64,000 bases of DNA from Tetramitus jugosus (GCA_937625935.1 OW569353.1:62001-126000), one strand, 5' to 3'. Positions 3,616 through 60,528 are shown, counted from the stretch's first letter. Program-made: numbers and translations. Notes: generated by a model not told the origin, from the sequence alone.

Positions 3616-3831
3616 ACTCGTCGCACAAACTCCTGTCGATGCACAATTGGGAGCGAATATAAGTCTCATTTTTTTATTTTTACAAGATAATAAATTGATA
3701 GTACAAGTGAGTGATGATTCTCTCATCTGATCAACAATGATGAACATGCAGCATGAAAAATAGAAGTTTGCTGTCACTGTCGATCATTTGTGATTCTCAT
3801 TGAGATGATATCACATCCACATCCACACAAC

Positions 3832-23500: not shown

Positions 23501-26500
23501 ATTCTCAATAGCTAGTGAAGCTAGTCGCTACGCCCTGACAGTCAATGGTTTCTCTTACGACTCAAACTATTGGATAGGTGACGGTTTAATTTCAACCGTT
23601 AACCCTCTTGGTTTAGACTCTGTCCACCCGCAGTTGGATACTTGTGGAAACAATCAAGACGGTATGAATCCCAAAGATAGTCTCGGAAATCAGAATGCTG
23701 CTTCATTCAGCACCTATGATAGAGACAATGATGGTTACTATTACCAACACATGGCAAACTACTATGGTGCTGGTTGGTGGTGGAGCAGCAGTGGAAATGT
23801 TTACTCAAATCTCAACGGCGCTTACAAGAATGGCACATATGCTGGAATCACCAATGGTATCATTTGGCCAGCATTGAAGAACACTGCTTCATATTCGATG
23901 CCATACACTGTGATGAAGATTCGACCTCGTTCATTCAACTGCAAGAACTCTACTTTCAGTTGCAGTGGTCATGGTGATTGTGATCAATATTTAGACAATG
24001 TTTCGGCTCAATCCATCTCTGAATACAAGGATAAATGTATATGCCAAACAGGATTCAATGGCACTGATTGCTCCGATCATGAAGAAAGAACCTGCAATGG
24101 AATATCTTCTCAATCCACCAGTGTTTGTTCAGGAAAGGGACAATGTTCTGCCTACGACTCATGCACATGTGTATCTGGATACGCTGGTGCTTGGTGCGAG
24201 AGATCTATTTCTCTCGGAACGGATAGTACTTACCCTGGTCTAACTTGCTTCGATATTCATCGAGCAAATGTGTCATTGCCTTCTGGAGTGTATTGGATCA
24301 ATCCTTCCAGAACAGCCACTCCATACCAAGTGTATTGTGATATGGACGACAAAGATGTTAATGGCAATTCTGGTTGGACTGTTGTTCAGAGAAGAGAGCC
24401 AAACAGTGGCTGCTTCAGTTTTAATCAAGTATGGAACAACTACAGAGATGGATTTGGTGATTTGTCTAGCTCTCACTGGCTCGGAAATGACAGATTGTTT
24501 GACATCACTCAAAATGTTCCTTCACAATTAAGAGTCACGCTCTTGTACAAAGGTAGTTTATATAGCGCTGACTATCGTACCTTCGCTGTCGGTGCACAAG
24601 CTACGAAGTATAGATTAACTATCAGCGGATACTCGTACGAAGGATCACAGAATCCGAAGGACGGATTGAGCGCCCACAACGGAGCGTTATTCAGTACAAC
24701 AGATGCGGATAATGATGGATATTATTATCAACACATGGCAAACTACTATGGTGCTGGTTGGTGGTGGAGCAGCAGTGGAAATTTTTACTCCAATCTCAAT
24801 GGAGCTTACAAGAATGGAACATACACTGGAGTGACCAATGGTGTAGTCTGGTCCGGTTTTGGAACGAATCTCTATTCAATTCCTTCAGTTGTGATGAAGG
24901 TTAGACCAAGATCAGTGTCAGGCGTTTACGCATACAATTGCATGAATTCTACTGTATCATGCAACGGTAACGGTTTCTGTAACTCTGCTGATTCTTGCGC
25001 ATGTTTCGATGGATATTCTGGATCTTCTTGCAATACCACAAGAACATGTAATGGAGTCGTGTTTAAGGATAGTTCAGTATGCTCTGGTCGTGGCATATGT
25101 GTCGGCTTAAATCAATGTTCTTGCTCATCTCCCTTCGCTGGTGTCAATTGTGAGCAACAGGTATCATGTTTTGGTGTCCTGGCAAACAGTTCAAGCGTTT
25201 GTTCTGGAAAAGGATCTTGCGTATCTCAGGACAATTGTGCATGTTCCTTTGGATATAGTGGAGCGGATTGTTCCGCTGGTCAATGTTACAATGTTTCAGC
25301 AACAAGCTCTTCGGTATGTTCTGGTAATGGTCGCTGTGTAGATGGAGCTTGTCAATGCAATGCTGGTTATACCAAGGACCAATGTGAGGAAGTGATTTGT
25401 CATAACCAACACGCATCTAATCCTTTGGTTTGCTCTGGAAATGGTGTATGTACTTCTCCTGATGTCTGTACTTGTACTCTGGGATACACTGGATCAAACT
25501 GTGATGTTTCTACATGCCACGGTTTGGAAGAATCAGATATTCAAGTATGCAGCGGAAATGGAATCTGTGTATCAGCTGATACCTGCTCATGTGCAGATGG
25601 TTTCTCAGGCTCCAACTGTGAAATCATCAGATATTGTGATGGAATTGCTTTCAATAATGGTTCAGTTTGCTCTGCTCATGGAAGTTGCATCCATAACGGC
25701 AGCTGTTCTTGCTTGCCTGGATACTCAGGATTGAACTGTGAGCTTAATGTTTGCTTCAATCTGACAAGTAATGATCCACAAGTGTGTTCAGGTCATGGAT
25801 CTTGTGTAGGACCAAATACATGCGCATGTCAACCAGGTTTTGGTGGTTCCTGTTGTGGTGCCGCTAGAACATGTGGTGGTATTTTATTCACTGATCCAAA
25901 TGTCTGTGCAGGACATGGAGTTTGTATCAAGGAGGATATTTGCCAGTGTGAAGTAGGCCACGAGGGAAGATTCTGTGGTCGCACCAGAACTTGTGGAGGT
26001 TACAATTTCACTGATCCTGAAGTATGTAGCGGAAGAGGAGAGTGTGTAGCTACTGACATTTGTTCTTGTTCCGATGGATACAAGGGATTCTCATGTGAAC
26101 TTCCGGTATGTTTCAGTAAGGCTAGTGGTGACTCCAATGTTTGTTCTGGACGAGGAACATGCGTAGCACCTAATGTTTGCGAGTGTCTTCCTCAATACTC
26201 TGGAATGAACTGTGAACTGACCAAATGTTATGGAAAGAACAACACAGATCCTACTGTATGTTCTTCTAGAGGAACCTGCAAGACACCAGATACTTGTGTA
26301 TGCAATTCTGGATATGATGGAGATGAATGCGAGCTGATACTCTGTAACGGTATTGGTCATGACAATGTTGAAGTTTGTAATAGTAGAGGAAACTGTACTG
26401 CGCCAAACAAGTGTTCTTGTGATCCATCTTTCCGCTATGCAGGAAACGATTGTGAATCAGCAATATGCTACGGTAAATTCGGTAGTGGAGCCTGCAGTGC

Positions 26501-29500
26501 CCATGGTGTATGTGCTTCTCCAGACAATTGCGAGTGTAGTCAGGATTATAATGGTTATGACTGTAGTGTCCCACTCTGTTTTGGTTTGAATGCTACTGAT
26601 TCCGATGTTTGCTCTGACCGAGGTACATGTGTTCGTGCTAATACATGCAGTTGTAATGCTGGATATGGAGCACAGGACTGCAGTCAACCTGTTTGTTATG
26701 GAATCTTGGCAACTAGTTCTGCCGTGTGTAGTGGTGTGGGTTCATGTGAATCACCAAACAACTGTACTTGTACAAATGGATACTTCGGTGATCGATGTGA
26801 GCAGACAACATGTTTCGATATTCACTATCGCAACGAGTCAGTTTGTAGTTCTCATGGATCGTGCGTTCAGCATGATAGATGCTCTTGTAACTTTGGTTAC
26901 GTTGGTACTGAGTGCGAAACCTTAACTTGCTACGGTCTGAATTCAACAGATGAGCGAGTGTGTAGTGGTCAGGGAGCCTGTGTAGCACCTAACAAGTGTG
27001 AATGTTCTACAGGATACACTGGAGCAACTTGCTCCAGTCCAATTTGTTATGGAGTTGCAAGCACTTCGAGTGCTGTGTGTTCAGGTCATGGCTCATGCTC
27101 TTCTCCAAATCAATGCGAATGTATTTCGGGATATAGTGGAAATCAATGTCAATTCCCAAGTTGCTTCGGAAAGAACAGTACGGATTCTAATGTTTGTGAT
27201 GGTCACGGAGTTTGCGCTAGCAAGGACTCTTGTGCTTGCTCTCCCGGTTTTATTGGCTCTAATTGTGATCAAATGGCTTGCTTCCAAGTTGCAAGTCAAA
27301 GTGCAGGAGTTTGTAGTGGCAATGGAAGATGTATCGGTCCTAATACTTGTAAGTGTGATGCAGGATTCGCTGGAGCCAATTGTGAATCGATAACGTGCTT
27401 TGGAATTAATGAACGAAGTCCTCTGGTCTGTTCGGGTCATGGATCATGTGCAAATTTCGACTCTTGTGTCTGCCGCCCAGGTTTCTCTGGAGCAGACTGC
27501 AGCGTTGTTCAATGTTTCGGAGTAAACTCCACAGATAGTAATGCTTGCTCAGGAAGTGGAACTTGTTACGGTCCTAATACTTGCAGTTGTGCAACAGGAT
27601 ATCAAGGAGCAGATTGCTCCTATCCTGTATGCTTCGGTAGAAGATCAGACTCTATCAGAGCTTGTGGTGGTCATGGTGTTTGTGTTGGTGTTGATCAATG
27701 TGTGTGCCATCCATTCTACTCTGGTAAGGATTGTTCAGTAACGACATGCTCCTCGACCGCATCCAACGACTCATCAGTGTGTTCCGGACATGGTCAGTGT
27801 GTCGCCCATGATACATGTTCATGTGCCGACGGTTATTCTGGAAGCAATTGCGAAGAATTTTCTTGTAATGGATTGAAGCCAAATGATTCGAATGTCTGCG
27901 GAGGTCGAGGAACTTGTGTTGGAATTGATGAATGCCAATGCCACAATGGTACTTATGGAGACAATTGTCAATACCATTACTGCCAGGTACAATCTGCTCC
28001 TACTGCTTCCTACTGCTCCGGTAGAGGAAACTGTTCCCAGGATAATGTGTGTGACTGCTCTGGAGGATACTTCGGAGGTAATTGCGAGCACACCACCTGC
28101 AGGAACGTCAATTCCACTGATTCTGCTTCTGTTTGTTCTGGTCAGGGTAAATGCACAGCACTTGATACTTGCACTTGCAGAAATGGATACCTCGGAGGTA
28201 ATTGTGAAGTCCCTGTTTGTTTCGGAAAGTCGAATATAACTGACGCTCAAGTATGTGGTGGCAATGGTGATTGCACCAGTGCTAACAAGTGCTCTTGCTC
28301 TGAGGGTTACTCCGGACTTGAATGTGAGTATCCTGTGTGTTATGGAATAGAAGCTGATGAACGTTCAGCCTGTTCGGGTAGAGGATCATGCTCCTCTCCA
28401 AACAACTGCGAATGTGATGCTGGCTGGATTGGTCCTGATTGTTCTATTCCAACCTGTTTCAACATTAGCTCGACATCTTCGTCTGTTTGTTCTCGACACG
28501 GTCAATGTGTTGCCAAAGACTTCTGTTTCTGTAATTCAGGTTACACTGGCGCAGAATGTCAAATTCCAGTCTGCTATCATTGGCCAGCCAATGATCCTTC
28601 TGTTTGCTCGGCTCACGGAAATTGTACTGCTCCAGATCATTGTGTTTGCGAGGAAGGCTACTACGGTGATGACTGTTCAAGTGGAAATTCTTCCAACGAT
28701 ACTTACTGCTATGGTATTGAGAGCATCGATTCTCAAGTATGTTCTGGTAATGGTTTGTGTGTCGATAGTGACGTTTGTAACTGTTTCGAAGGATTCACTG
28801 GAAGTCAATGTCAAGAAGTAGTATGCTATGGATTGAGTCAGAATGATCCCGCCGTTTGTAACCAAAATGGATATTGTGCAGCTCCAGACACATGTGTCTG
28901 TACTTCAGACAACTTTGGTGGTGCTAATTGTTCAACACCAATTTGTAGTGAACGTCTGGCTGATGATCCATTGGTATGCTCAAGTAGGGGATCTTGCCTC
29001 GGTCCGAATGTGTGTGAATGTAATGAAGGTTACACGGGTGCAAATTGCGAGGAGTCAGCCTGTTCTGGTTGCTCTGGAAATGGATTCTGTGTCGCACCAT
29101 ATACTTGTGAGTGCTATGTTGGATGGGTGGGACAGGAATGCGATATTCCAGTATGTCACGGTTTGAATGCTTCTGATCCTGCTGTTTGTTCTGGTTTTGG
29201 TCGTTGCTCGGCCAACGGTTGTAATTGTTCCGATGGTCATGCTGGAGAGCAGTGTGAGCAAGTTGTTTGCTATGGCGAGAGATCAGATAGTCCAACCAGC
29301 TGTTATGGACATGGCATCTGTGTGGATGTTGATGTATGCCTCTGTGAAGAAGGATGGGTAGGAGATTGTTCAATTCCTGAATGCCATGGTGTGGATTCTC
29401 TCAATGAAACCTCATGCTCTGGATCTGGAACATGTATTGCACCTGATACTTGTAGCTGTAATTCAGGATTTGGAGGAAGTAGTTGCGAATATCCAATCTG

Positions 29501-32500
29501 TTTTGGTTTCAACTCTTCAGATGCTCGAGCCTGCTCTTCACACGGTACTTGCTCTGCTCCTGGAGCTTGCATTTGTATTGAAGGATGGAGTAGCCATGAT
29601 TGTAGTGTTCCTATTTGTCATGGAGTAGTGGCAACTGACTCTTCTGTTTGTAACGGTAATGGATCTTGTCTCGCTCCAGATATGTGCGAATGCAACTCAG
29701 GATATGCTCCAGACAACAATTGCCAGCAACCAATTTGTCATGGAGTAAATAGTGGTAATAGCTCCGTGTGCTCGGCTCATGGTTCTTGTATTAGTCCAGA
29801 TAACTGCGCATGTAGTTATGGATGGGTAGGATCTGATTGCTCTACTCCAATCTGCTTCCACAGAAATGCAACTGATGGTTTGGTCTGCAGTGGAAATGGT
29901 GTCTGTCAGTCGGTGGACAATTGTGAATGTGGAGAAGGATACTCGGGAACTGAGTGTTCAGTCCCTGTTTGCTTCGGCTTTAATGGTTCTGACTCTCAAT
30001 CATGCTCTTCTCACGGATCATGCGTTGAACCAAATAAGTGCTTATGTGAAGAAGGATATACAAACCTAGATTGTAGCACTCCTGTTTGCTTTGGTGCTGA
30101 ATCAACCAACTATTCCGTATGTTCTTACCATGGAGCGTGTGTCGATAAGGATACCTGCGATTGTGTAGAAGGATTCACTGGACAGAAATGTGAACTACCA
30201 GTTTGCTTCTCCAAGACCCTCTTGAATGACACTCTATGTTCCGGTCATGGAAACTGTGTTGAGCCAGACCTATGTCAATGTGAACAAGGTTTCACCGGAA
30301 TTGAATGTGAGTTGCCTGTATGCTATGGATTGTCTGGAGAAGGAGCTTGTTCTGAAAGAGGCTCATGTTCCGCACCAGATCAATGTACGTGCTCAGAAGG
30401 TTTCACTGGTGATCAGTGTGAATTGATAATTTGTCATGGATTGGACACATCAGATGCTAGCGTTTGCTCTGGTCATGGCGTGTGCTCCTCTCCCGATTTG
30501 TGCGAGTGCTCTGCTGGGTACAGAGGTGCTAATTGCTCTTTGCCTGTCTGTTTCAGTTTAGATAACACTCAGGACGGAGTTTGCTCGAACCATGGAACTT
30601 GTGAGTCTCCTAATACTTGTACTTGTGAAGAAAACTACACCGGAACGAATTGTCAGGTTCCAATATGTTTTGGATTCAATGCTACCTCCCCACAGGTTTG
30701 CTCAGGAAATGGTCGCTGTATATCTGCTGATCAATGCGTGTGCATGCCTGGTTACACCGATGTTGATTGCGATGAACCAATATGCTATGGACTCAATCAA
30801 TCTAATCCAAACTGCTGCTCAGGAAATGGTTTTTGTAACGCCCCAGACACTTGTATCTGTAATGATGGATACTATGGTCACGATTGCTCCCAATTCGATT
30901 GTTTCTATGTTGCGGGTAATTCATCTCGTGTCTGCAGTACTCACGGAAGCTGTGTTGACAAGGATACTTGTGTTTGTGAAGAGTTGTACTTCGGCGAAAA
31001 TTGTGAACAAACAACTTGCTATGGAATTAACTCCACAAATCCTAGTGTTTGTTCATCTCACGGTAGCTGCAAATACTTCGATTCTTGCCTGTGCTTGAAC
31101 GGAAGTTATACAGGTGATCAATGTGAACAAAGTATTTGCTTCGGTAAGAACTCTTCCGATAGCTCTGCATGTTCATCCCATGGAGACTGCGTTGCACCAA
31201 ACAATTGTCAATGCCACGAAGGATACATGGGTACAAAGTGCGATATTCCAATATGTTTCAATATTTCAGCTACTGAGGAGTCGGTGTGCTCTGGTCAAGG
31301 AAACTGTGTGTCTCCAAACATGTGTGAATGTGACACCGGTTATACTGGCGACCAATGTCAATTGAGTATTTGTTATGGAATCAACCAAACAGATCCTTCT
31401 GTTTGCTCTGGACACGGAGCTTGTATTGACCGTGACAACTGCTTATGTTCAAACGGATATGGATACACAGGAAGTCGATGTGATGTTCCAATTTGCTATG
31501 ATTTCTCAGGTTCTGATCCATATGTTTGTTCATCTCACGGAACTTGTGTTTCTCCAAGTCACTGTGAGTGCAAACCTGGTTACACAGGAAAGAATTGCCA
31601 ATTGAACATTTGTTATGGAGTCAACCAAACAAGTTGTGCTGTTGTTTGCTCTGGACATGGAGAATGCATAAGACCGGATACTTGTTCTTGCTCAAACGGA
31701 TATACAGGAATGGAATGTGAATCTCCTATTTGCTATGATGTCTCGAGCTCAGATCCAAATGTTTGTTCATCTCACGGAACTTGTGTTTCTCCAAATCAAT
31801 GTGAGTGCAAACCTGGTTACACAGGAAAGAATTGCCAATTGAACATTTGTTATGGAGTGAATGAAACAAGATTTGCAGATGTTTGTTCTGGACATGGAAA
31901 CTGTGTGTCTCCAAATAATTGCGAGTGCAAATCTGGTTACACCGGAAAGAATTGCCAATTGAACGTATGCTATGGAATCAATCAGACCAGTTGTTCAGTT
32001 TGTTCTGGACATGGAGAGTGCATCAGACCAGATACCTGCTCTTGCTCGAACGGATACACAGGATCTGACTGTAGTGTTCCAATTTGTAATGGTGTACTAG
32101 GAAATAGTCCAAACGTGTGCTCATCGCACGGTTCTTGCCAATCACCTGATAATTGCTCCTGCCGATCAGGATACACTGGAAGAAACTGTGAACTTGTCAG
32201 TTGTTTCGGTGTTGCTTCTGATAACGCTTTAGTATGTTCAGGTCAAGGTCAATGCATGAATCCAAATCAATGCGAGTGTTCTTCAGGATGGACAGGATCT
32301 AAGTGCGATATTCCGATATGCTACGATATCAATGGCACAAGTATTAATGTTTGCTCGGGTCATGGTCAATGCATGAATCCAAATCAATGCCAATGTTCTC
32401 CAGGATGGACAGGATTGAAGTGTGACATTCCAGTGTGCTATGGTATTAACGGTACAAGTTCATATGCCTGTTCAGGTCATGGTCAATGCATGAATCCAAA

Positions 32501-33911
32501 TCAATGCGAGTGTTCTCCAGGATGGACAGGATTGAAGTGTGACATCCCAATATGTTACAACATCAATGGTACAAGTGTTAATGTTTGCTCCAGCCATGGT
32601 CAATGTATGAATCCAAATCAGTGCCGATGCTCTCCAGGATGGACAGGATTGAAGTGCGACATTCCAGTGTGCTATGGTATCAACGGTACAAGTGTTAATG
32701 TTTGCTCGGGTCATGGTCAATGCATGAATCCAAATGAGTGCAAATGTTCTCTCGGATGGACAGGATTGAACTGTGACATCCCAATATGCCATGGTGTCAA
32801 CGGAACAAGTGTTAATGTTTGCTCCACTCATGGTCAATGCGCATATCCAAACCAATGCGAGTGCTCCCCAGGATGGACAGGATTGAAGTGCGATATTCCA
32901 GTGTGCTATGGTGTAAACGGCACAAATTCTAATGCTTGTTCCAGTCATGGTCAATGCATGAATCCAAATCAATGCCAATGTTCTCCAGGATGGACAGGAT
33001 TGAAGTGCGACATTCCAGTGTGCTATGGTCTCAATGGAACGAATTCTAATGTTTGTTCCGGTCATGGTGTTTGTGTGGGTCCTGACACCTGTCAATGCAC
33101 TCCTTACTGGGAACTAAACCAATGTCAGCAACAATCTTGCTATGGTCAAGTGTTGTCTGAGCCTTCACTAACTGCTTTGAACTCGGTAACAAACTCAAGC
33201 TGTGTTGGAAAGTATGATAACGACCCTATCCAGCTCTTGGCATCTCTTTCTCACTCGAACTTCTCTGTTAGTCTCTTTGAATGGAGAGATGAGAGAGGTG
33301 TGCTTGTCAGAAGTACTTTAGGATTCTCAGGTACGGGATCAACATTGTTGACACCTCAGTTGCGTCCAACTTGTGACACATCCTACACCGCTCTTGCCAA
33401 ATTGGAGCACAGATGCTTTGGACAAAGATCGTTGAACGCTACAGTGTTCGTCAAGGTCGCTGAACGTCCTCAACTTTCAATCAGTCCTTCTGGATGTGTT
33501 ACGAGAAGAAGCGGTTTTGATTCTACTGTTCGTTTAACTGCGACTCTCCCAAAGAAATCTAGCTTTGTAACAAGTTTCAAATGGGTTTCATCCTCAGGAG
33601 AGACGTACACCACTCAGACGATTGATGTCGCTCCAACAAGCACCACGACATACACTGCGGTATTAACTTATCAGAAAGACTGCTTCAACCGTGGTACCAT
33701 CTCAGTATCCACTGTTGTTAGAGTAGTTGACGTGTCTTGTGGCAAGAAGAAGGTCACAGTGTGCAAGGTTCCGCCAGGAAACCCTAGAAACGCTCATGAA
33801 ATTTGTGTTTCGGAGAATGCTGTTTCTGCACAATTGTCAACTGGCTCTTATGTCGGCCCATGTTCATTGTCCTACACTGATTGTCCGAGAAGTAGCGAAC
33901 GAGACTGCTAA
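17565..33911 (+). CDS. Giant secreted protein (5448 aa): signal peptide, 7 fibrinogen C-terminal (FReD) domains separated by EGF pairs, about 70 tandem EGF-like repeats, 2 Ig-like domains and a C-terminal cysteine motif
   Basis: Hydrophobic signal peptide. Seven copies of SGVYWI...F.VYCDM...GWTVIQRR...FNQ.W..Y..GFG....HWLGN...FST.D.DND...GAGWWW...NLNG at about 17810-24910. 39-aa C..VCSGHG.C...C.C..GY.G..C repeats at about 24930-33140. No transmembrane segment seen. Confidence 0.93.
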   Translation: MSTTSIALKACLLVLLILNTLVLTQQQQDVQCFGIASSSAATVCSGHGSCSFTDVCYCEPFYGGSQCQLYLGNALGASSSNPGKSCFHVHRANYTLPSGVYWISPSGVSSSSFRVYCDMNDKDEFGNAGYTVIQRREPSTASQNFNQDWATYAAGFGAIGKSHWLGNDKISLLTKSASHMLRIQMVYKGVGYKANYRQFSVGDSVANYKLSVSGYSYDDQYWTSTGYIEGDSAVPVLGSCGQKLDGLDPRDSFSVQNNALFSTNNRDNDLYSYQHMANYYGAGWWWSSGNVYSNLNGVYKNGTYTGVANGIVWVGRENTLSYSIPEVTMKVRLASYTCKNRTVSCSGHGICNELDQCVCDAGFLGSDCSDHVDRTCNGILSTNATVCAGHGQCVGHDKCNCDYGYGGSFCATRLTLGATADFPGRHCFQIHRSNNALPSGIYWINPKNVTGGAFQVYCDMDDKDLFGNAGWTVIQRREPSTACFDFNQHWNSYKTGFGNLNTSHWLGNENIYTITSSDSFELRIDMQRRGVSYKANYNVFSVGSQATSYRLTTSGYSYDTVYWAGNGYYISTNPLNLDKQIHQQLDRCGTVRDGVDPKDGFSAHTNAMFSTYDKDNDGYSYQNMASYYGAGWWWMSSGNVLANLNGVSKNGTYSGVTNGIVWNSDNSYSMNDVVMKIRPRSYKCKNSAVSCSGHGSCDGYDTSVPPQNTTTWSDTCTCDEGFFGADCSDRVDRSCHGYSATHKYVCSTRGTCVAQDTCKCRLGAAGKRCEKVIELGTDPSFPGYDCFHIHRANPALASGVYYVNPSNTTDGVFKVYCDMDDKDQNGYAGWTVIQRREPDTACFDFNQNWINYRDGFGSLQSSFWLGNEQIYNLTNKASHELRIDLEFGKKLYKANYAQFSVDSAATKYRLKVSGYSYDTMYWTSAGYTISSNPMKLDSIYPKMDQCGVNLNGMDPTDGFAVQNGAMFSTKDADNDGYSYQHMANYYGAGWWWMSSGNVASNLNGVYRNGTYKVDSLLWPSFSTSSTFSVMKIRRNSYSCKNRTTSCSGYGDCDRYSTLVTPEKISVFQDICVCDLGFFGDDCSDNYQRSCNGIEAKDPNVCSAKGKCVAHERCLCDVGYGGKACEKKLKLGTDPTFPGEHCFHIHRSDRTLPSGVYWVNPNNSTAFQVYCDMDDVDPSGNAGWTVIQRRESASSCYNFNQPWVAYRNGFGSLYTSHWLGNRQINLLTTTTAGMELRIDMTYGSDSYKANYYTFAVNSEANRYGLTIGGFSYDREYWVGSGYFAATNPVNLDKQIHQQLDSCGGVIDGLSPNDGFGAQNGASFSTNDRDNDGYYYQHMANYYGAGWWWSSSGNVYSNLNGAYKNGTYAGITNGIIWPALKNTASYSMPYTVMKIRPRSFNCKNSTFSCSGHGDCDALTDWISPSYMTKWRDMCICDEEAGYFGPNCADRKYRTCDGVAANSTCVCNGHGACVAQDTCKCETGYGGLYCEVRLVLGGDRTFPGFDCFHIHRSNRTLSSGVYWINPKNVTGGAFQVYCDMDDKDLFGNAGWTVIQRREPSTSCYNFNQNWVNYRDGFGALNSSFWLGNEYIYTLSTSDRAKMQLRVDMEYKGRLYNANYDTFSLGNEASKYKLTIGGYSYDQQYWTGDGYHISTNPLSLDYVHPELNACGALVDGLNPKDSLSLSTGALFSTRDADNDGYYYQHMANYYGAGWWWMSSGNVNVNLNGAYRNGTYAGVSNGISWQALEGTLNYSPTYVSMKVRSRSYTCKNRTVSCSGNGDCDYYLQSLTGNYVSSWKDVCVCDPGFMGDNCADNINRMCGGLPSSNPNVCSGNGQCIGQDICSCNLGYGGDVCETKLQLGTEKSFPASHCFQIHRSNRTLPSGIYWINPKNVTGGAFQVYCDMDDKDLFGNAGWTVIQRREPSTSCYNFNQNWVNYRDGFGDLDLSHWLGNEKVNQMTTTSSMSLRIDMIYDKQLYKANYAGFSIASEASRYALTVNGFSYDSNYWIGDGLISTVNPLGLDSVHPQLDTCGNNQDGMNPKDSLGNQNAASFSTYDRDNDGYYYQHMANYYGAGWWWSSSGNVYSNLNGAYKNGTYAGITNGIIWPALKNTASYSMPYTVMKIRPRSFNCKNSTFSCSGHGDCDQYLDNVSAQSISEYKDKCICQTGFNGTDCSDHEERTCNGISSQSTSVCSGKGQCSAYDSCTCVSGYAGAWCERSISLGTDSTYPGLTCFDIHRANVSLPSGVYWINPSRTATPYQVYCDMDDKDVNGNSGWTVVQRREPNSGCFSFNQVWNNYRDGFGDLSSSHWLGNDRLFDITQNVPSQLRVTLLYKGSLYSADYRTFAVGAQATKYRLTISGYSYEGSQNPKDGLSAHNGALFSTTDADNDGYYYQHMANYYGAGWWWSSSGNFYSNLNGAYKNGTYTGVTNGVVWSGFGTNLYSIPSVVMKVRPRSVSGVYAYNCMNSTVSCNGNGFCNSADSCACFDGYSGSSCNTTRTCNGVVFKDSSVCSGRGICVGLNQCSCSSPFAGVNCEQQVSCFGVLANSSSVCSGKGSCVSQDNCACSFGYSGADCSAGQCYNVSATSSSVCSGNGRCVDGACQCNAGYTKDQCEEVICHNQHASNPLVCSGNGVCTSPDVCTCTLGYTGSNCDVSTCHGLEESDIQVCSGNGICVSADTCSCADGFSGSNCEIIRYCDGIAFNNGSVCSAHGSCIHNGSCSCLPGYSGLNCELNVCFNLTSNDPQVCSGHGSCVGPNTCACQPGFGGSCCGAARTCGGILFTDPNVCAGHGVCIKEDICQCEVGHEGRFCGRTRTCGGYNFTDPEVCSGRGECVATDICSCSDGYKGFSCELPVCFSKASGDSNVCSGRGTCVAPNVCECLPQYSGMNCELTKCYGKNNTDPTVCSSRGTCKTPDTCVCNSGYDGDECELILCNGIGHDNVEVCNSRGNCTAPNKCSCDPSFRYAGNDCESAICYGKFGSGACSAHGVCASPDNCECSQDYNGYDCSVPLCFGLNATDSDVCSDRGTCVRANTCSCNAGYGAQDCSQPVCYGILATSSAVCSGVGSCESPNNCTCTNGYFGDRCEQTTCFDIHYRNESVCSSHGSCVQHDRCSCNFGYVGTECETLTCYGLNSTDERVCSGQGACVAPNKCECSTGYTGATCSSPICYGVASTSSAVCSGHGSCSSPNQCECISGYSGNQCQFPSCFGKNSTDSNVCDGHGVCASKDSCACSPGFIGSNCDQMACFQVASQSAGVCSGNGRCIGPNTCKCDAGFAGANCESITCFGINERSPLVCSGHGSCANFDSCVCRPGFSGADCSVVQCFGVNSTDSNACSGSGTCYGPNTCSCATGYQGADCSYPVCFGRRSDSIRACGGHGVCVGVDQCVCHPFYSGKDCSVTTCSSTASNDSSVCSGHGQCVAHDTCSCADGYSGSNCEEFSCNGLKPNDSNVCGGRGTCVGIDECQCHNGTYGDNCQYHYCQVQSAPTASYCSGRGNCSQDNVCDCSGGYFGGNCEHTTCRNVNSTDSASVCSGQGKCTALDTCTCRNGYLGGNCEVPVCFGKSNITDAQVCGGNGDCTSANKCSCSEGYSGLECEYPVCYGIEADERSACSGRGSCSSPNNCECDAGWIGPDCSIPTCFNISSTSSSVCSRHGQCVAKDFCFCNSGYTGAECQIPVCYHWPANDPSVCSAHGNCTAPDHCVCEEGYYGDDCSSGNSSNDTYCYGIESIDSQVCSGNGLCVDSDVCNCFEGFTGSQCQEVVCYGLSQNDPAVCNQNGYCAAPDTCVCTSDNFGGANCSTPICSERLADDPLVCSSRGSCLGPNVCECNEGYTGANCEESACSGCSGNGFCVAPYTCECYVGWVGQECDIPVCHGLNASDPAVCSGFGRCSANGCNCSDGHAGEQCEQVVCYGERSDSPTSCYGHGICVDVDVCLCEEGWVGDCSIPECHGVDSLNETSCSGSGTCIAPDTCSCNSGFGGSSCEYPICFGFNSSDARACSSHGTCSAPGACICIEGWSSHDCSVPICHGVVATDSSVCNGNGSCLAPDMCECNSGYAPDNNCQQPICHGVNSGNSSVCSAHGSCISPDNCACSYGWVGSDCSTPICFHRNATDGLVCSGNGVCQSVDNCECGEGYSGTECSVPVCFGFNGSDSQSCSSHGSCVEPNKCLCEEGYTNLDCSTPVCFGAESTNYSVCSYHGACVDKDTCDCVEGFTGQKCELPVCFSKTLLNDTLCSGHGNCVEPDLCQCEQGFTGIECELPVCYGLSGEGACSERGSCSAPDQCTCSEGFTGDQCELIICHGLDTSDASVCSGHGVCSSPDLCECSAGYRGANCSLPVCFSLDNTQDGVCSNHGTCESPNTCTCEENYTGTNCQVPICFGFNATSPQVCSGNGRCISADQCVCMPGYTDVDCDEPICYGLNQSNPNCCSGNGFCNAPDTCICNDGYYGHDCSQFDCFYVAGNSSRVCSTHGSCVDKDTCVCEELYFGENCEQTTCYGINSTNPSVCSSHGSCKYFDSCLCLNGSYTGDQCEQSICFGKNSSDSSACSSHGDCVAPNNCQCHEGYMGTKCDIPICFNISATEESVCSGQGNCVSPNMCECDTGYTGDQCQLSICYGINQTDPSVCSGHGACIDRDNCLCSNGYGYTGSRCDVPICYDFSGSDPYVCSSHGTCVSPSHCECKPGYTGKNCQLNICYGVNQTSCAVVCSGHGECIRPDTCSCSNGYTGMECESPICYDVSSSDPNVCSSHGTCVSPNQCECKPGYTGKNCQLNICYGVNETRFADVCSGHGNCVSPNNCECKSGYTGKNCQLNVCYGINQTSCSVCSGHGECIRPDTCSCSNGYTGSDCSVPICNGVLGNSPNVCSSHGSCQSPDNCSCRSGYTGRNCELVSCFGVASDNALVCSGQGQCMNPNQCECSSGWTGSKCDIPICYDINGTSINVCSGHGQCMNPNQCQCSPGWTGLKCDIPVCYGINGTSSYACSGHGQCMNPNQCECSPGWTGLKCDIPICYNINGTSVNVCSSHGQCMNPNQCRCSPGWTGLKCDIPVCYGINGTSVNVCSGHGQCMNPNECKCSLGWTGLNCDIPICHGVNGTSVNVCSTHGQCAYPNQCECSPGWTGLKCDIPVCYGVNGTNSNACSSHGQCMNPNQCQCSPGWTGLKCDIPVCYGLNGTNSNVCSGHGVCVGPDTCQCTPYWELNQCQQQSCYGQVLSEPSLTALNSVTNSSCVGKYDNDPIQLLASLSHSNFSVSLFEWRDERGVLVRSTLGFSGTGSTLLTPQLRPTCDTSYTALAKLEHRCFGQRSLNATVFVKVAERPQLSISPSGCVTRRSGFDSTVRLTATLPKKSSFVTSFKWVSSSGETYTTQTIDVAPTSTTTYTAVLTYQKDCFNRGTISVSTVVRVVDVSCGKKKVTVCKVPPGNPRNAHEICVSENAVSAQLSTGSYVGPCSLSYTDCPRSSERDC
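32247..33065 (+). repeat. Seven near-identical 117-bp tandem EGF-coding units
   Basis: The GGTCAATGCATGAATCCAAAT-like start recurs at 32247, 32364, 32481, 32598, 32715, 32832 and 32949 (period 117). Confidence 0.9.
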
Positions 33912-52060: not shown

Positions 52061-52396
52061 TTCAGATTCTCAACTAGAAGTTTGCTTTTGAGCACCAATT
52101 TTGTTTTGTTCGTCCAAGTGTGAGCAGTTTTTGGGACGGTGTGGAGGAGAAATCTTTTGGAGGAGTTTTTCGGGATGGGAACATGAAAGTTCTGGGCTGG
52201 TTCTACTGTGGTAGTGGAGCTGAGTGCAGGAGTCTATGTTTTTCTTTTGAAATCAAGTTACAATTGGTGTCCATGTTTGTCAATACAACAATCTTCTCGA
52301 GTTCTGTTTTTGAGTGAAGTTCAATCTGGAGTTTGTTCACAAAAACAAGAGAACAACATTCACACGAAGCAAAAACAACTGACCGAGAGTAGGATT

Positions 52397-53593
52397 ATGC
52401 AAGTTGATCAAAGTGATGCCCCCTCATCGTACTACAAGGGATACGGTAAAATGAGTGAATCGACACAAGCCTGGAATCTGTCTCAACAGGAGCACAACCA
52501 GTTATTCAACAAGACGCAATGGGTCGTTACGGAGAAGCTGCATGGAGCCAATTGTAGCTTTGTGCTGAATGCAAAGTCTACCCCGAGTGTAACAACCGAT
52601 AACAAGTTGCAATTCATTGTTCATTGCGGCAAGAGAAGATCACTCTTATTGAGCAATGAAGAGTTCTTTGATGTGCAGAGCATTATGCCACAGATGACAC
52701 AAAAGTTGAACGAGATACATGAATTGATACAGTCTACGGATCCATCTGTCTTGCAACTCAAGCCTGATTGGATCACAGGTTATCACCATTTGTATGTGTT
52801 TGGAGAGTTGTTTGGTGGATATTATCCCAGTGTGGAACAAGGCAAGAAGAAGGAGTCTGATGCGATACAGAGTGGAATTTGGTATTCTCCCAATATTGAA
52901 TACTGTGCATTTGACATTGCCATTCAACTCGAATGTGGTACGCAATACTTTTTGGATTACAGTGTGATACAGTTGCTTTTTGGGCGAGTGAACATGATGT
53001 ACAATGAGCCATTGTTTATCGGCAAGTTTGAGCAGTGTATGGACTATAATATTCACTTTGTTACCAAAATACCTGATATGCTGAGTCTACCTCCTATTGA
53101 GGGCAACAAGGCCGAAGGTGTTGTCATTCGTCCCATGAGAGAACTCGCGGTCAATACGAAGAAAGGCATGGTTCGTCCATTGATGAAGAGAAAGATTGAA
53201 GAGTTTTCTGAGGCTAGGTTCGATATGAAACAAAAGCAGAGCTCTGGTGTCAGCAGCAGCTCCTCTTCGTTCGACAATGGTATCAGCGCTGCAGTCATGT
53301 GTGAGTACGAAATGCAAGGTTTGGTTACAATGAATAGATTGAACAATGCTATATCAAAGCTTGGAAAACCTGATGCAAACAATAAGGCACAGAACGTGGA
53401 ATTACTCGAATTGTACGTATCGGACGTCTTGGAAACCTTGGCTGACGACGGAGACAGCGGACCATTGTTCCATTCGCTGACGGAACAGGAGAAACATGAA
53501 CTGAGAGATAAGACTGTGATCCAATCAAAACAAATCATTTATGAATACTACAAGCAGCAACAAAAGGCCGCCAGACAATCAAAATCAACCTAA
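52397..53593 (+). CDS. ATP-dependent RNA ligase, Rnl2 family
   Basis: Motif I TEKLHGAN, III VFGELFGG, IIIa YCAFDI, IV AEGVVI, V MKRK..FSE, plus the C-terminal VTMNRLNNAISKLG domain. First likely ATG is at 52397. Confidence 0.9.
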   Translation: MQVDQSDAPSSYYKGYGKMSESTQAWNLSQQEHNQLFNKTQWVVTEKLHGANCSFVLNAKSTPSVTTDNKLQFIVHCGKRRSLLLSNEEFFDVQSIMPQMTQKLNEIHELIQSTDPSVLQLKPDWITGYHHLYVFGELFGGYYPSVEQGKKKESDAIQSGIWYSPNIEYCAFDIAIQLECGTQYFLDYSVIQLLFGRVNMMYNEPLFIGKFEQCMDYNIHFVTKIPDMLSLPPIEGNKAEGVVIRPMRELAVNTKKGMVRPLMKRKIEEFSEARFDMKQKQSSGVSSSSSSFDNGISAAVMCEYEMQGLVTMNRLNNAISKLGKPDANNKAQNVELLELYVSDVLETLADDGDSGPLFHSLTEQEKHELRDKTVIQSKQIIYEYYKQQQKAARQSKST

Positions 53594-55191: not shown

Positions 55192-55264
55192 TCCTCCGAG
55201 CGTGACTCGAACACGCGACCACAAGATCTACAGTCTCATGCTCTACCATCTGAGCTATCAGAGG
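55192..55264 (-). tRNA. tRNA-Tyr (anticodon GUA), intronless
   Basis: The minus strand reads CCTCTGA TA GCTCAGATGGTAGAGC A TGAGA CTGTAGA TCTTG TGGTC GCGTG TTCGAGT CACGC TCGGAGG A. This is a 73-nt cloverleaf with the C1-G72 and A73 Tyr identity elements. Confidence 0.96.
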
Positions 55265-55307
55265 TTCGTGTCTGACTTTCTACATTTCGAGAATATTAAT
55301 CTAAAAA

Positions 55308-55320
55308 TAACACAAGAAAG
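55308..55320 (+). repeat. Left target-site duplication of copy 1; right copy at 56336-56348
   Basis: TAACACAAGAAAG is exact at both ends. It is extendable by up to 5 A on the left (ambiguous with the poly-A) and 1 A on the right. Confidence 0.92.
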
Positions 55321-56335
55321 ACGCAACCTAATGACATCATCAAAAGGCTGTTCAAGGTGGGAATAGGTCTGAGGAGCCAATTGACAGTGGGTGGAAAGTG
55401 GATCAGGCATAGAGAACTGGTCAAAAGACACGGAAACTTTGGGATTAGTTCTCGCAGATACAAGTACTTGACTAGTGATCTCGAAATGTTAAAGTGCAAT
55501 GGTCAACATGAGCACTCAAACGTCACTACACCAAGGCTAATGTACAATGGTAGTTTTGAGGTCGTAGAGAAGGAACAGTTGTGGAGAGTCTTCTTGCGGC
55601 GACATAGAGATAGGGTGAAAGAGGAGAAGTTATGGTGGATACAGTCGAAATGTCTAGGAGGTGAGGTAGATTTTAAATTTATGAGATGCCCTTTCAGGGT
55701 TGATCGTGCTCTGGAATGGTTCGTTGCTCAGGTGAAAAGTCACACAATTCACACTAGAGCCGTTATCCAACATCTCTATGGAGTAGTGGACATGGACACG
55801 CTATGCCCCAAATGCAAACTTGAACAGGAAACTGTGTTACATTGTCTCGTTCGATGCCCGGTGGCGATAATGGCCAGAAGGCAGTTGGTGAAGGAAGTTT
55901 CCACCAAGCTGAGTAAAATGGGTCTTCACAAAGACCAAAGTGTAGATATGTGGTTCGACAATCGACGATGGTGCAACGGCGCGTTGCAGGTCAATAAGAG
56001 GAGGAAAACAAGCAAGGAATACATGCTTGGCATGTTGGGTATTGAAACAAGGGCGCTGAAACAAGTGATCAAAGGACTGACGAAGAGTGGGATGGAGAAG
56101 AAGAAGGCGATTGTGAAGGCCCAACAATTTGTCGATCATACAAAGAGGAGGTGTGTGGAGGTGATGCGACGCCTCTTCACGAGTTCAAAGGAGATTGCTG
56201 GTTGCTAATGCTCTACGAGCATTTGCAACTACTTAAATCAATAGTGACGGCATTCTGCCGTCACGAAACTGATACAGAGAATCAACAAAGAAGTAAAATG
56301 AGCAACCAATGGTTGTATTTAAAAAAAAAAAAAAA
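55321..56335 (+). mobile_element. Non-LTR retrotransposon copy 1: about 1 kb, 5'-truncated, inserted upstream of tRNA-Tyr
   Basis: The frame is open from the junction to TAA at 56208 and encodes the ORF2 C-terminus with a zinc knuckle (CPKCKLEQETVLHCLVRCP). The 3' UTR ends ATGGTTGTATTT followed by A15. It is flanked by the direct repeat (AAAAA)TAACACAAGAAAG(A). Confidence 0.93.
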
Positions 56336-56603
56336 TAACACAAGAAAGAAACCATCAACTGTTCCCGTCAACCAAGGAGAAACAGAAACAATGACCTCAT
56401 TGGGAAAAATTATACAGATAACCAGGGCCATAGAGCGTTGGCTATTGCAAACGAAAGACAAAAAAAAGAAATTGAGGAAGAGGCAAAACGGAGTTATAAA
56501 AAGCAAGCAGGATGGTGGAAGCTGCATTGCGCTCTGTCAAGGGTCCTATATGGTTTGAGGATGTTGTGTACGAAAGTGGAAAGATACAACCATCGGACGC
56601 AAA

Positions 56604-56723
56604 AGCCTACATTACTGAGGGTTCTCGAGTAGTCTCCTATCTCAATACTAACTCAGCCAGATGGTGCTTAACTTCTCTATTCGAAATGGGAAGAGGTGGT
56701 TCCACCATTGTATGAACGTAGAC
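56604..56723 (-). rRNA. 5S ribosomal RNA gene
   Basis: The minus strand reads GTCTACGTTCATACAATGGTGGAACCACCTCTTCCCATTTCGAATAGAGAAGTTAAGCACCATCTGGCTGAGTTAGTATTGAGATAGGAGACTACTCGAGAACCCTCAGTAATGTAGGCTTTT. It is about 120 nt with a GTCTAC/GTAGGC terminal helix, box A (AGTTAAGC), loop E (TTAGTA), box C (GGAGAC) and a T4 terminator. Confidence 0.95.
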
Positions 56724-56756
56724 AGCTAACTTATTTTTTCACATACTTTGGCCGTT

Positions 56757-56772
56757 TCGGCCGGACTAATTC
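56757..56772 (+). repeat. Left target-site duplication of copy 2; right copy at 60039-60054
   Basis: TCGGCCGGACTAATTC is exact at both positions. Confidence 0.95.
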
Positions 56773-59700
56773 AAGGTCGCCACTGTTGACGAAAGGGTTT
56801 CATATTTGTTCCCGAAGAACAAAAAGGAACAGAGATGGATACTATACGGCCAAAGTGTAGTGAATGAATTGGAGAGTGGCGATGTCGAGAACATAAAAGA
56901 TGTGGACAGGCAATGCGATGCGATTACAACCACAATACTGAAACACGCACAGTCGTTCCGCAAAACTGACAGTCCGAATGTTTGGAGACACAACAGAGCA
57001 GTTCGTAGGCTTTTACAACATAGGACCATACTAATGAAATATTTGGAGGGGCATGTGTGGAGTTCGAAGCTTGAAGCGCTGTGCATTAATTGTGAAGGTG
57101 CATCTAGATTGAACAAAGTGTTGGAAACGCTCTGTCAAGTTAACAAAGTTCTGCACCATAACAGAGCCATGAAGACTAGAGAAAGGTTTCGGAAATGGGA
57201 ATGGATGGCTAGAACTGCGGAATTCAGCGACCCAACCAAGTTCTTCTCGGCGGCCTCGGCTAAAAAGAGTTGCAGAGTCAGACTGGCAAGAGTCACTAAG
57301 GAAGGAATGGAACATACTGACCCAGTTACTGTAGGAGAGGTGGCTGCCAAGTATTTCGAGCAAGCGTTCAAAAGGGAGGAAGCCGACATGGGGTTCCTGA
57401 GGAGTTTGGAATATCATGGTGACAAGAGAAAGATGCGGGAAGCATTTGTCCCATTTGTGACAGAGGAAGTGGTAACGGCCGTAAAATGGTTGCGGAACAA
57501 GAAATGTCCAGGAGCAGACGGACTGCACAATGAAATGCTCAAACTGCCTCAGACTAAGGAAAGAGACTATAATTTTGCGCTGGCTGAAATCCTGTGTGGG
57601 TTCTTCAACAACGTGACCTCCAGTGGGTGCTTCCCTAAGGCGTAGAAAGAGTGTATCATCATCCCTGCCTACAAGAAAGGGGATGTGACCAACCCGGAGA
57701 ATTACCGACCGATTTGTCTGCTGAGTTCCTTGTCCAAACTGTATACCAAGCTGCTTAATATGAGAGTTTCTAAAGCTGCGGAGGTAAGTGGAGTGTTCAC
57801 CAACGTGCAAGGTGGAGGGAGGAAATTCCGTGATATTAGAGAAAAACTTTCGATTATCAGAGGAGTGATTGACTCGGCCAACCGGCATGACAAACAACTG
57901 TATCTGTTGTTAACCGACATCTCTAAAGCCTTCGATTCGGTGCCACATAATGCAATCGAAGCAGTGTATAGGTTTTTTGGCTTCCCGGAAGGAATCGTAA
58001 GACTTGTGAGTGGAATGGTCAGAGACAATTTTGCGCGAGTGCTCACGTCATCCTTGTCACGGAGGTTCCATATGGGAAAGGGAACGAGACAGGGTGATTC
58101 CCTCTCTCCAACAACATATGTATTGGTACATCAAACAGTGCTGATGTATGTTAACAAGAGAATGGATGGATACAGGGCTAGGTCACAGAGGCTGTGGAAC
58201 GCAGCGTATGTAGATGACTGCAACTTGTTTGCTGAGTCTAGAGCAGACATAGAAAGAGCTGCAGAAGCAATGTCTGCAGTTCTCGGTTCACTTAGGATGA
58301 CCATGCATCCTGACAAGCTGGAACTGTATGTGAGAAAGTCCGAAGACGACAATTGCCATGACATCGCGGTGAATGAAAAGTTGGTGAAAGCGCGAAATCG
58401 GAGAGAAGGGTTCAGAGCTCTAGGTCTGTTCACCAATCTTCAAGGTGATACCATGAAGCAGCGTGAGCAAGCTTGGCAGAAGGCTCAAAGGGTGGTAGTT
58501 AGGCTGAAGTTGATGAAACTGACATCAAGACAAGTGAGCAGAGTTGTCAATACTTGCATTCACCCGATATTCTCATACGCCTCAGAGTTCACAGACTGGT
58601 CATCAGAGTGGTTGAACAAAGTAAATTTGCTGGGCAGGAGCCTAGTGAGGCATGGATCTACTGCAATGCCGCGATTTCCAGTGGATCTTCTCTCAGTAGG
58701 AGACGATAAGGGGTTGATGGGATTGAAAGACATCGAGGAGACTATCACGACCCGTACGTCATGGTTCGTGTACTCGATGATACTTGGGAAGAGGGACACA
58801 GAGGCCAGACAACTGTTTCGTGGCACGCTTGAGGAAATCAAGCAAACACAAACATTCCAGAACGAGAATGTATTCCAGTCACGAAACAGGATTGAAGTTG
58901 TCAGGCACTCTTACCTCAAGTGGTGTGCTAGCAGAATGCACAAACATAAAATACGAGTCACCAAAACAAATAGCTCCTGTGATAGTTGTTGCTTGGCCAG
59001 GTATGTACCGAGTGCAATTCTCAAGAAGCTCTACAAGGCAGGTATCACAAGCCGTGCGCAACTTATGGTGGATGAACATCCTCTATGTCTGAAGGAATTT
59101 AAGCATATTTTTCCCTCCTGCAAGGTCGGAGCAAGGTCGTATGAGGTGCTGAAAGTGTTAATATCCCAAATGGATGGATGTGGATGTGGAGGGAAAAGGT
59201 CCACCGAAGGTGCAGAACCGGCATTGTACAAAGGAAATCTGCATGTGGAAAGTAGATCGCATCTCCAGTCGTTGTTTGATCAAGAAAGAAGTGCAAGAAT
59301 AGATGAAGACGAGCGATGTTGGCTACAGAGGGCAGCAAATAACAGTGGTGCAGATTTTAGCTTCATCAAATACCCACATGGTATAGACAGGAAGCTGGAG
59401 TGGTTCCATGCACAGGTACGCAGTGGCACACTCCACACAGCAGAAGTTGTACGATATATGTACAACACTGGTGAGGAACAGGTCAATTGCAGCTGGTGTC
59501 AGAAGGAGCCCGAAAGTGTGCTGCATTGCTTGATAAGGTGTCCAAGGGCCATTATGGTTAGAAGGCAATTGGCTGTGAAAGTGGGACATGAGCTCAAGAA
59601 GATGGGAATCCCCGAATCTGCCTACGTCGATGTCTGGTTCGATGAGGTGCGACTGAAGGAAGGAAAAGTTGTGAGGCAACCGCTCAAAAAGTCTAGCCGT

Positions 59701-59898
59701 GAACTGCTGCAAGGAATGATGGGTATAGAAACGGACGCCATCATGGAAGTCGCTGAAGGCCTTGTGTCTGGAGGAATGAAGAAGACGCTGGCACAGAAGA
59801 AAGCCAAAACATATGTGAACAGTGTCAAGAGGAGATGTCTCAAGACTCTCCACCACCTGTTCATTACAACGAAGGATAAATGTAATCAACGGCAATGA
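56773..59898 (+). pseudogene. Truncated ORF2 (linker, reverse transcriptase, CCHC zinc knuckle) with one in-frame TAG at 57643-57645
   Basis: One frame from the junction. Motifs: KCPGADGL, FPKA*KECIIIPAYKKGD..NPENYRPICLL (stop at the conserved Trp), DISKAFDSV, GTRQGDSLSP, YVDD and CSWCQKEPESVLHCLIRCP. No endonuclease domain is retained. Confidence 0.92.
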
Positions 59899-60038
59899 CG
59901 CTTTCCGGCGTCATTGCCTACCAACTGGAAGCTAACCAGGCCCACGCTCTTCGAGCGTAGGCAAGTGAATAAGCAAAGATAATAAAAAGAGCAACGGTTG
60001 CATAAATGAAATGGTTGTATTAAAAAAAAAAAAAAAAA
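56773..60038 (+). mobile_element. Non-LTR retrotransposon copy 2: 3.27 kb, 5'-truncated, L1/TRE-like, inserted upstream of the 5S gene
   Basis: RT-bearing ORF2 fragment. The 3' UTR ends ATGGTTGTATT followed by A17 (60022-60038). It is flanked by an exact 16-bp direct repeat, TCGGCCGGACTAATTC. Confidence 0.96.
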
Positions 60039-60528
60039 TCGGCCGGACTAATTCCTTGTAAACTGAAGGTTATGCGAGAAGAAGAAACTTCTCTTCCCAT
60101 CTTAAGAAAGTGAGATTGTATTGAATATTTCAAGAGTTAAATAAATAATCCTGGATCAATAGTCGTACACGGAAAGGAAGGAGACTTAAAGGAGGAATTC
60201 CTGGACGAAATGAAACTCTCTAGCTGGGGATGGCTTTCGTTTTGGAGACTTATTGCTTGATACCACTCTTTAGCTTCTGGTTGCTTGTTTCACTTTTTGT
60301 GTTTCAACACCGCCTTTGACATGCTAATAGTAGTGAGTAGACTGCTGATCCTCTACTTGTTGTGGAAAGCGAGATCGGAGGAGTCCAAAAGGAAAATGCT
60401 CCTGCTGTAAGTAATGACCGAAATAACATCCGTCACTTTCGCAGGACCTCTCCTTCAAAATTTCTGTTGTTCATAGGTTGGAGCGAGAAGAAGTAAACTG
60501 ACAAAACCTTTAACAAAGCAAGTATCAA

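Follow-up and report, generated by a model that had tools for sequence, protein, structure and literature searches.

Why do both non-long-terminal-repeat (non-LTR) retrotransposon copies in a 64,000-nucleotide stretch of the Tetramitus jugosus assembly (GCA_937625935.1, OW569353.1:62001-126000; hereafter the window) lie directly upstream of a gene transcribed by RNA polymerase III (Pol III), one of them at a tRNA gene and the other at a 5S rRNA gene? We examined the two loci together with samples of elements and genes from the whole assembly. The copies belong to a group of long interspersed nuclear elements (LINEs) that very probably integrates about 50 bp upstream of tRNA and 5S genes in opposite orientation, and that would do so by target-primed reverse transcription at a site set by a tether to the Pol III complex.

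The first copy (copy 1; 55321-56335, counted from the first letter of the window) is a 5′-truncated non-LTR element of 1015 bp, whose target is a tRNA-Tyr(GTA) gene on the minus strand (55192-55264; ARAGORN; Rfam RF00005, 62.2 bits). Both elements and all of their parts are on the plus strand. Copy 1 retains the last 283 codons of the second open reading frame (ORF2; 55357-56208), followed by a hairpin in the 3′ untranslated region (UTR; 56244-56264), the terminal motif GGTTGTATTT (56311-56320) and a poly(A) tract of 15 A (56321-56335). A search for target-site duplications (TSDs) found TAACACAAGAAAG on its gene-proximal side (55308-55320, about -44 to -56 from the tRNA 5′ end) and again on its distal side (56336-56348). 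The tRNA-Tyr gene is intronless, which is unusual among eukaryotic nuclear tRNA-Tyr genes.

Copy 2 (56773-60038; 3266 bp) is likewise 5′-truncated, and its target is a 5S gene on the minus strand that matches the full Rfam model (56604-56723; RF00001, 100.4 bits). Its ORF2 remnant (56776-59898) is broken by a single in-frame TAG (57643-57645) and carries a reverse transcriptase (RT) domain (about 57676-58332; RVT_1, E 3e-26) and a Cys-His motif (near 59497-59550). Two 3′UTR hairpins (59891-59918 and 59939-59963), the terminal motif GGTTGTATT (60013-60021) and a poly(A) tract of 17 A (60022-60038) complete the element, which is bracketed by the TSD TCGGCCGGACTAATTC at 56757-56772 (gene-proximal, -34 to -49 from 5S +1) and 60039-60054 (distal).

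Both TSD pairs are perfect direct repeats, and in each case the element 5′ end faces the 5′ end of the gene, across 56 bases from the tRNA-Tyr 5′ end to copy 1 and 49 from 5S +1 to copy 2. A preliminary description of this DNA had reported two poly(A)-tailed, TSD-flanked insertions in this head-to-head arrangement at just these distances, and it proved exact to the base. A tblastn search found no third copy of the element in the window; ARAGORN and Rfam place one tRNA gene and one 5S gene there. The two copies are related through ORF2 (36% identity over the C-terminal 283 aa of copy 1). Contig C40 holds a copy with 98% identity to copy 1, and another (locus L008) is equally close to it over 319 nt. 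For copy 2, the element at a tRNA-Phe gene (contig C2) is a 100% match over 885 nt. Both window copies are dead, 5′-truncated members of a multi-family LINE group with an APE-type endonuclease.

Position of element copies upstream of tRNA and 5S genes

DNA searches of the 26.35-Mb assembly (56 contigs) with copy 1 and copy 2 as queries matched at least 56 and at least 46 places, respectively, which were merged into 76 loci. We inspected 40 of these, picked on DNA similarity alone. At 31 of the 40 loci, a tRNA gene, a 5S gene or a gene remnant adjoins the element 5′ end: a tRNA gene is present in 25, and a 5S gene or its 29-nt 5′ remnant in 6 more (at L030, nt 1-29 of the 5S gene stand at the expected place). 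For 5 further loci, the element 5′ ends lie beyond the extracted sequence.

Insertion points could be mapped where TSD pairs bracket a poly(A)-ended element, with 24 exact pairs and 4 pairs with one mismatch giving 28 mapped insertions. In all 28, the element 5′ junction lies 38-58 nt upstream of a tRNA or 5S gene. The 24 tRNA-linked insertions fall at 42-58 nt (the 20 with exact TSDs span 42-57, median 51.5) and the 4 TSD-mapped insertions linked to 5S genes at 38-51 nt; TSD length is 9-19 bp (median 15). The gene is on the opposite strand for every mapped insertion that has an intact annotated gene upstream. Because the arrangement seen in the window recurs at 26 further mapped insertions across the genome, it is far beyond chance. 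The targeting proposed in the preliminary description would have been refuted had most copies stood away from Pol III genes, had their orientation been random, or had a target sequence common to the sites explained them; the outcome favours the proposal.

The same position has been struck repeatedly (L013, L031, L006, L010/L009). At the stacked loci L006, L010/L009, L027, L031 and L040, the newer copy lies at the canonical distance and the older ones are displaced outward, and at L013 a second insertion lies 7 nt inside the first copy (-52 vs -45). The TSDs of the two window copies had been described as sharing no sequence, an observation that extends to 23 reconstructed empty sites, which have no common motif: at neither TSD edge does any position exceed 0.34 bit. 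The insertion targets are unrelated flanking sequences upstream of genes, not one fixed sequence within a repeat. Targeting is therefore position-specific, not sequence-specific.

One apparent exception is a 2.7-kb copy with a 15-17-nt TSD (L007), next to which ARAGORN and Rfam call nothing. This copy is inserted at -54/-55 of 37-50 nt that resemble the 5′ half of tRNA-Gly(UCC), comprising the acceptor, the D arm and the anticodon arm as far as UCC, with the 3′ half missing (L007:6698-6734; contig C3, about 412780-412816). Nine other genomic copies of the tRNA-Gly-like sequence (94-100% identity) are probably normal tRNA-Gly genes; about 240 nt upstream of one of them (C1:358837, minus strand), an element tail likewise lies on the opposite strand. 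With the tRNA half recognised, the exception resolves and fits the head-to-head arrangement.

The converse count takes the genes as its starting point. The 3′ end GGTTGTATT(T)(A)n is shared by all families, and the corresponding tail pattern GTTGTATTWAAAAAA has 201 genomic matches, compared with 2 for a reversed control. The gene sample comprised 40 5S genes and, out of 63 tRNA matches, the 34 nuclear tRNA genes whose contigs are included in the tail positions used (the first 100 of 201). A tail within 6 kb upstream on the opposite strand was found for 11/34 tRNA genes and 8/40 5S genes, and on the same strand for none (0/34 and 0/40; 0/74 overall); about 0.023 tails per gene are expected by chance in each configuration. 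The resulting occupancy of 20-30% is a lower bound, since degenerate tails are missed.

The 5S genes themselves are dispersed singly over many contigs, neither arranged in a tandem array nor linked to the ribosomal DNA, and at least 40 copies (of 138 candidates), among them the target of copy 2 in the window, are 100% identical over 120 nt. At L014, two divergent 5S genes (2688-2807, minus strand; 3553-3668, plus strand) are separated by 745 bp that include an element fragment, and the second is just 96.7% identical to the other 5S copies. Contigs C54 and C56 carry tRNA genes at identical coordinates (941, 12773, 14364, 14438, 44585); they look like one molecule assembled twice, which is probably mitochondrial.

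Members of these families are also present in contigs of four environmental metagenomes (hot spring, groundwater, soil and freshwater). These data are assembled contigs, which cannot show expression. In several contigs, a 5S 5′ end is followed by an unmatched spacer and then by the copy-2 family, with five different truncation points, and in one contig a tRNA-Tyr 5′ end is joined to the last 65 nt of the copy-1 family. These junctions are other loci with independent insertions. No clear empty-site allele appeared among the four metagenome runs, and two metagenome scans, one for the tRNA-Gly-like half and one for relatives of the ORF2 C-terminus, returned nothing. A groundwater contig follows the 5S upstream flank of the window to position 56754 and continues with the last 100 nt of the element (from 59940); it may represent another allele of the window locus, in which the copy is much shorter or has lost an internal part.

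Anatomy and relatives of the elements

A full-length element measures about 5.3 kb. The preliminary description had called for the recovery of such a copy, and one intact example with ORF1, APE and RT lies 50 nt upstream of a tRNA-Val gene (L034:502-5853), flanked by the TSD AGCCGGAGAC. Its ORF1 encodes 463 aa and starts at element nt 1; in two other full-length copies it starts at nt 3 and nt 13. Since the ORF1 ATG lies within nt 1-13 of all three, the element has essentially no 5′UTR. In L034, a 37-nt A-rich stretch (AAAGA(n)GC; L034:465-501) separates the proximal TSD from the ORF1 ATG and may have arisen at the 5′ junction without a template or by template switching. The 1273-aa ORF2 follows in the -1 frame; its start codon overlaps the stop codon of ORF1 (ATGTTGA), so that reinitiation rather than frameshifting is possible.

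The intact ORF2 contains an APE domain (Exo_endo_phos), an RT domain (RVT_1) and a C-terminal CX2CX8HX4C motif, which gives a sub-threshold match to zf-RVT (E 0.039); it has no RNase_H match. Among solved structures, the APE domain is best matched by L1 endonucleases (E 4e-7), and the RT by R2 (E 2e-27), slightly above L1 ORF2p (E 6e-21).

ORF1 matches no Pfam family, Transposase_22 included, and has no Atlas neighbour at a score of at least 0.9. Its AlphaFold model (pLDDT 78-89 over residues 15-220) contains two domains resembling the RNA recognition motif (RRM), a 37-residue helix, disorder and a basic helix, and its best structural matches are tandem-RRM proteins and RRM-RRM-coiled-coil DBHS proteins. 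The model thus shows a predicted tandem RRM, a putative coiled coil and a disordered basic tail. In this order ORF1 would differ from L1 ORF1p, in which the coiled coil is followed by the RRM and the C-terminal domain (Transposase_22), whereas here the two predicted RRMs precede the coiled coil.

The 3′UTR is about 130 nt long and forms GC-rich hairpins whose stems differ between families yet stay paired, as judged from visual and scripted comparison. Directly before the tail stands an invariant CAAC...GTTG helix; RNAalifold recovers just this invariant 5-bp terminal helix.

At least 5 or 6 families share the common 3′ end, and their ORF2 proteins are 48-71% identical. In an RT tree of the amoeba's families and their 104 best database matches, the family RT domains form one clade (SH-aLRT 100) on a stem of 0.94 substitutions per site, apart from all 104 matches. 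A HMMER search of 1.84 billion representatives returned same-family fragments of 44-91% identity on short metagenome contigs and one of 61% identity in the NCBI assembly GCA_037189345.1. The remaining matches were generic LINE RTs of at most 31% identity (arthropods, an alga, metagenome proteins). The single dictyostelid match, from Polysphondylium violaceum, is an APE-RT-RNase H element of the NLTR type that lies elsewhere in the RT tree, and its ORF1 has no similarity to the ORF1 described here.

As all sampled families sit at Pol III genes, the preference probably predates the family split. The near-identical copies (98-100%) and the intact L034 copy point to recent activity of the families, as far as can be read from sequence.

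Insertion model and competing explanations

The geometry suggests how integration may proceed. In target-primed reverse transcription, the first nick would fall on the sense strand of the gene at the gene-proximal TSD edge, about -38 (median -38.5 in the empty site), since in this reaction the primer strand is cut at whichever edge of the TSD comes to adjoin the repeat on the poly(A) side. The second nick would follow about 15 nt further out, at about -50. The site would be set by tethering of the element ribonucleoprotein to the Pol III pre-initiation complex, and the outcome would be a safe harbour in a gene-dense 26-Mb genome.

At tRNA genes, TFIIIC binds first and then TFIIIB; at 5S genes, the order is TFIIIA, TFIIIC and then TFIIIB, so that the two gene classes have just TFIIIB and the polymerase in common upstream of +1. 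TFIIIB would be the most likely partner, because it is the sole factor upstream of the start that type 1 (5S) and type 2 (tRNA) promoters share, and because insertions fall where its upstream edge lies. The offsets at 5S genes are up to about 10 nt shorter than those at tRNA genes, approximately the length of a tRNA leader. Measured from the transcription start, the insertion window is therefore best placed at about 40-50 nt upstream, where TFIIIB has its outer edge. By analogy with the Dictyostelium discoideum element TRE5-A (also called DRE), the adaptor would be the ORF1 protein (ORF1p), with the ORF2 protein (ORF2p) as another candidate.

Several points weigh against a tethered, Pol III-directed insertion. 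Four of the 40 loci (L001, L016, L028, L038) hold element fragments with no recognisable Pol III gene, and an Rfam scan of the gene-less loci gave nothing at gathering score, with chance-level matches near L007. The short contigs with related fragments (L041, L043-L045) have no flanking Pol III gene. The sample comprises about 40 of at least 200 element copies. No exact tail motif was found near 2 U6 genes and 3 of 4 signal recognition particle (SRP) RNA genes, among those on contigs covered by the listed tails; at an occupancy of 20-30%, these five genes say little. Targeting is shown for tRNA and 5S genes, and the U6/SRP sample is too small to read. Finally, TFIIIB is a putative tether, with TFIIIC, Pol III and chromatin features as other candidates.

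The strongest competitor concerns the tether alone: the same targeting could run through TFIIIC, Pol III itself or chromatin, such as the edge of a nucleosome-free region. All of these are present at both tRNA and 5S genes, nothing in our data separates them, and yeast Ty1 offers a precedent with the Pol III subunit AC40 as tether (PMC7459421). The insertion window is, however, narrow (about 20 nt) and equally offset at type 1 and type 2 promoters, which fits a factor fixed upstream of +1, and TRE5-A, with equal geometry, binds TFIIIB through ORF1p (PMC5911963). We therefore regard one of these other tethers as a serious candidate, though an improbable one.

Descent from, or horizontal transfer of, a dictyostelid TRE5 element would make the targeting inherited and not convergent. 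The resemblance is close. The upstream distances published for TRE5-A are 40-54 bp at tRNA genes and 37-41 bp at 5S genes, again in opposite orientation, and its ORF1p binds TBP, Brf1 and Bdp1 (PMC5911963). The elements described here, at 42-58 (tRNA) and 38-51 (5S) nt head to head, share these offsets, including the slightly shorter distance at 5S genes. Common to both systems are two ORFs, an ORF2 in the -1 frame with the order APE-RT-zinc-finger-like (Cys/His), an oligo(A) tail, frequent 5′ truncation, a sizeable share of occupied tRNA genes and a compact host genome. TRE5 is moreover filed under L1, and the APE domain here is closest to L1-type endonucleases among solved structures.

Against kinship stands the sequence record: beyond the same-family fragments no database match exceeds 31% identity, the P. 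violaceum match falls elsewhere in the RT tree, and the amoeba's families form one long-stem clade. No sequence affinity beyond generic LINE RT was detected among the database matches. TRE5 elements have modular UTRs (A and B modules 5′, B and C modules 3′), whereas here such modules are lacking and ORF1 begins at nt 1-13. The 3′UTR hairpins, the fixed GGTTGTATT end and a predicted tandem-RRM ORF1 with no detectable homologue set the present elements apart as well, as do dispersed chromosomal 5S genes as natural targets and a host that is apparently heterolobosean, not amoebozoan. A lineal relationship to TRE5 is thus unlikely, slightly more so than a tether other than TFIIIB.

Convergence has a published precedent in Polysphondylium pallidum NLTR-B, a non-LTR element unrelated to the TREs that inserts 39-64 bp upstream of tRNA genes and gained this preference convergently (PMC5006619; PMC5911963). 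Unlike NLTR-A and NLTR-B, in which RNase H follows the RT, the present elements have no RNase H, and the RNase H-bearing P. violaceum element is not their neighbour in the RT tree. The yeast LTR element Ty3 reaches Pol III genes through TFIIIB, as a gene class rather than a sequence (PMC5006619). It resembles the present elements in aiming at a kind of gene, but Ty3 is integrase-based and inserts 1-4 bp from the start site, so that chemistry and distance differ entirely.

Two further explanations can be dealt with briefly. If insertion were random and just the harmless copies upstream of Pol III genes survived, as strong selection against other sites in a gene-dense genome might favour, this could not yield a 20-nt window, uniform head-to-head orientation, zero same-strand copies and nested re-insertions a few nt apart, and we give survivorship hardly any credence. 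Some Tx1-group LINEs do insert sequence-specifically into multicopy RNA genes, but these recognise one defined sequence inside a repeat, whereas here the flanks upstream of the genes are unrelated, the 23 empty sites lack a motif at either nick and new copies enter older element sequence at the same distance (L013); a sequence-specific endonuclease whose motif happens to lie upstream of Pol III genes is equally far-fetched.

Co-mobilisation of a Pol III gene together with the element was also considered and is excluded, as the direct repeats enclose nothing but the element and the spacer varies from locus to locus.

Host, novelty and implications

The preliminary description had judged the host not to be a dictyostelid and probably to be a heterolobosean. 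One marker bears this out: the best named matches of the aldehyde dehydrogenase encoded in the window are three heteroloboseans, Acrasis kona (54%), Willaertia magna (50%) and Naegleria fowleri (49%). The N-myristoyltransferase carries no host signal, its matches all being 26-35% identical. On this protein evidence, the host is probably heterolobosean. The window also contains an uninterrupted ORF of 5448 codons (17565-33911, plus strand) and a T4 Rnl2-type RNA ligase gene with RNA_ligase and T4_Rnl2_C domains (52208-53593, plus strand).

The Pol III-targeting non-LTR elements known by 2018, namely TRE5, TRE3, NLTR-A and NLTR-B, were all dictyostelid (PMC5911963, Table 1), and a 2016 survey found no such elements in Physarum, Acanthamoeba or Protostelium (PMC5006619). 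Our full-text search of the searchable library found no publication tying such elements to Naegleria or Heterolobosea. The behaviour is of a known kind, in a new, sequence-isolated family and a distant host.

It is an evenly balanced proposition that Pol III-tethered LINE integration arose independently in Discoba, with the tandem-RRM/coiled-coil ORF1 protein or ORF2p as the adaptor that would contact TFIIIB, and with the preference kept by every family of one old, isolated LINE clade. If true, non-LTR elements would have reached the 50-bp solution at least three times (TRE5, NLTR-B and the present clade) in two supergroups, and the elements would serve as markers of Pol III genes and remnants overlooked by standard annotation tools. 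The intact copy and the near-identical insertions suggest current activity and would make experiments feasible if the amoeba is culturable. A second, sequence-unrelated system of equal geometry, found in a distant protist whose genome is compact, would provide an independent case on what makes position -50 special. It would show which contacts with the Pol III machinery get reinvented, and whether a small adaptor can steer a LINE to a safe harbour.

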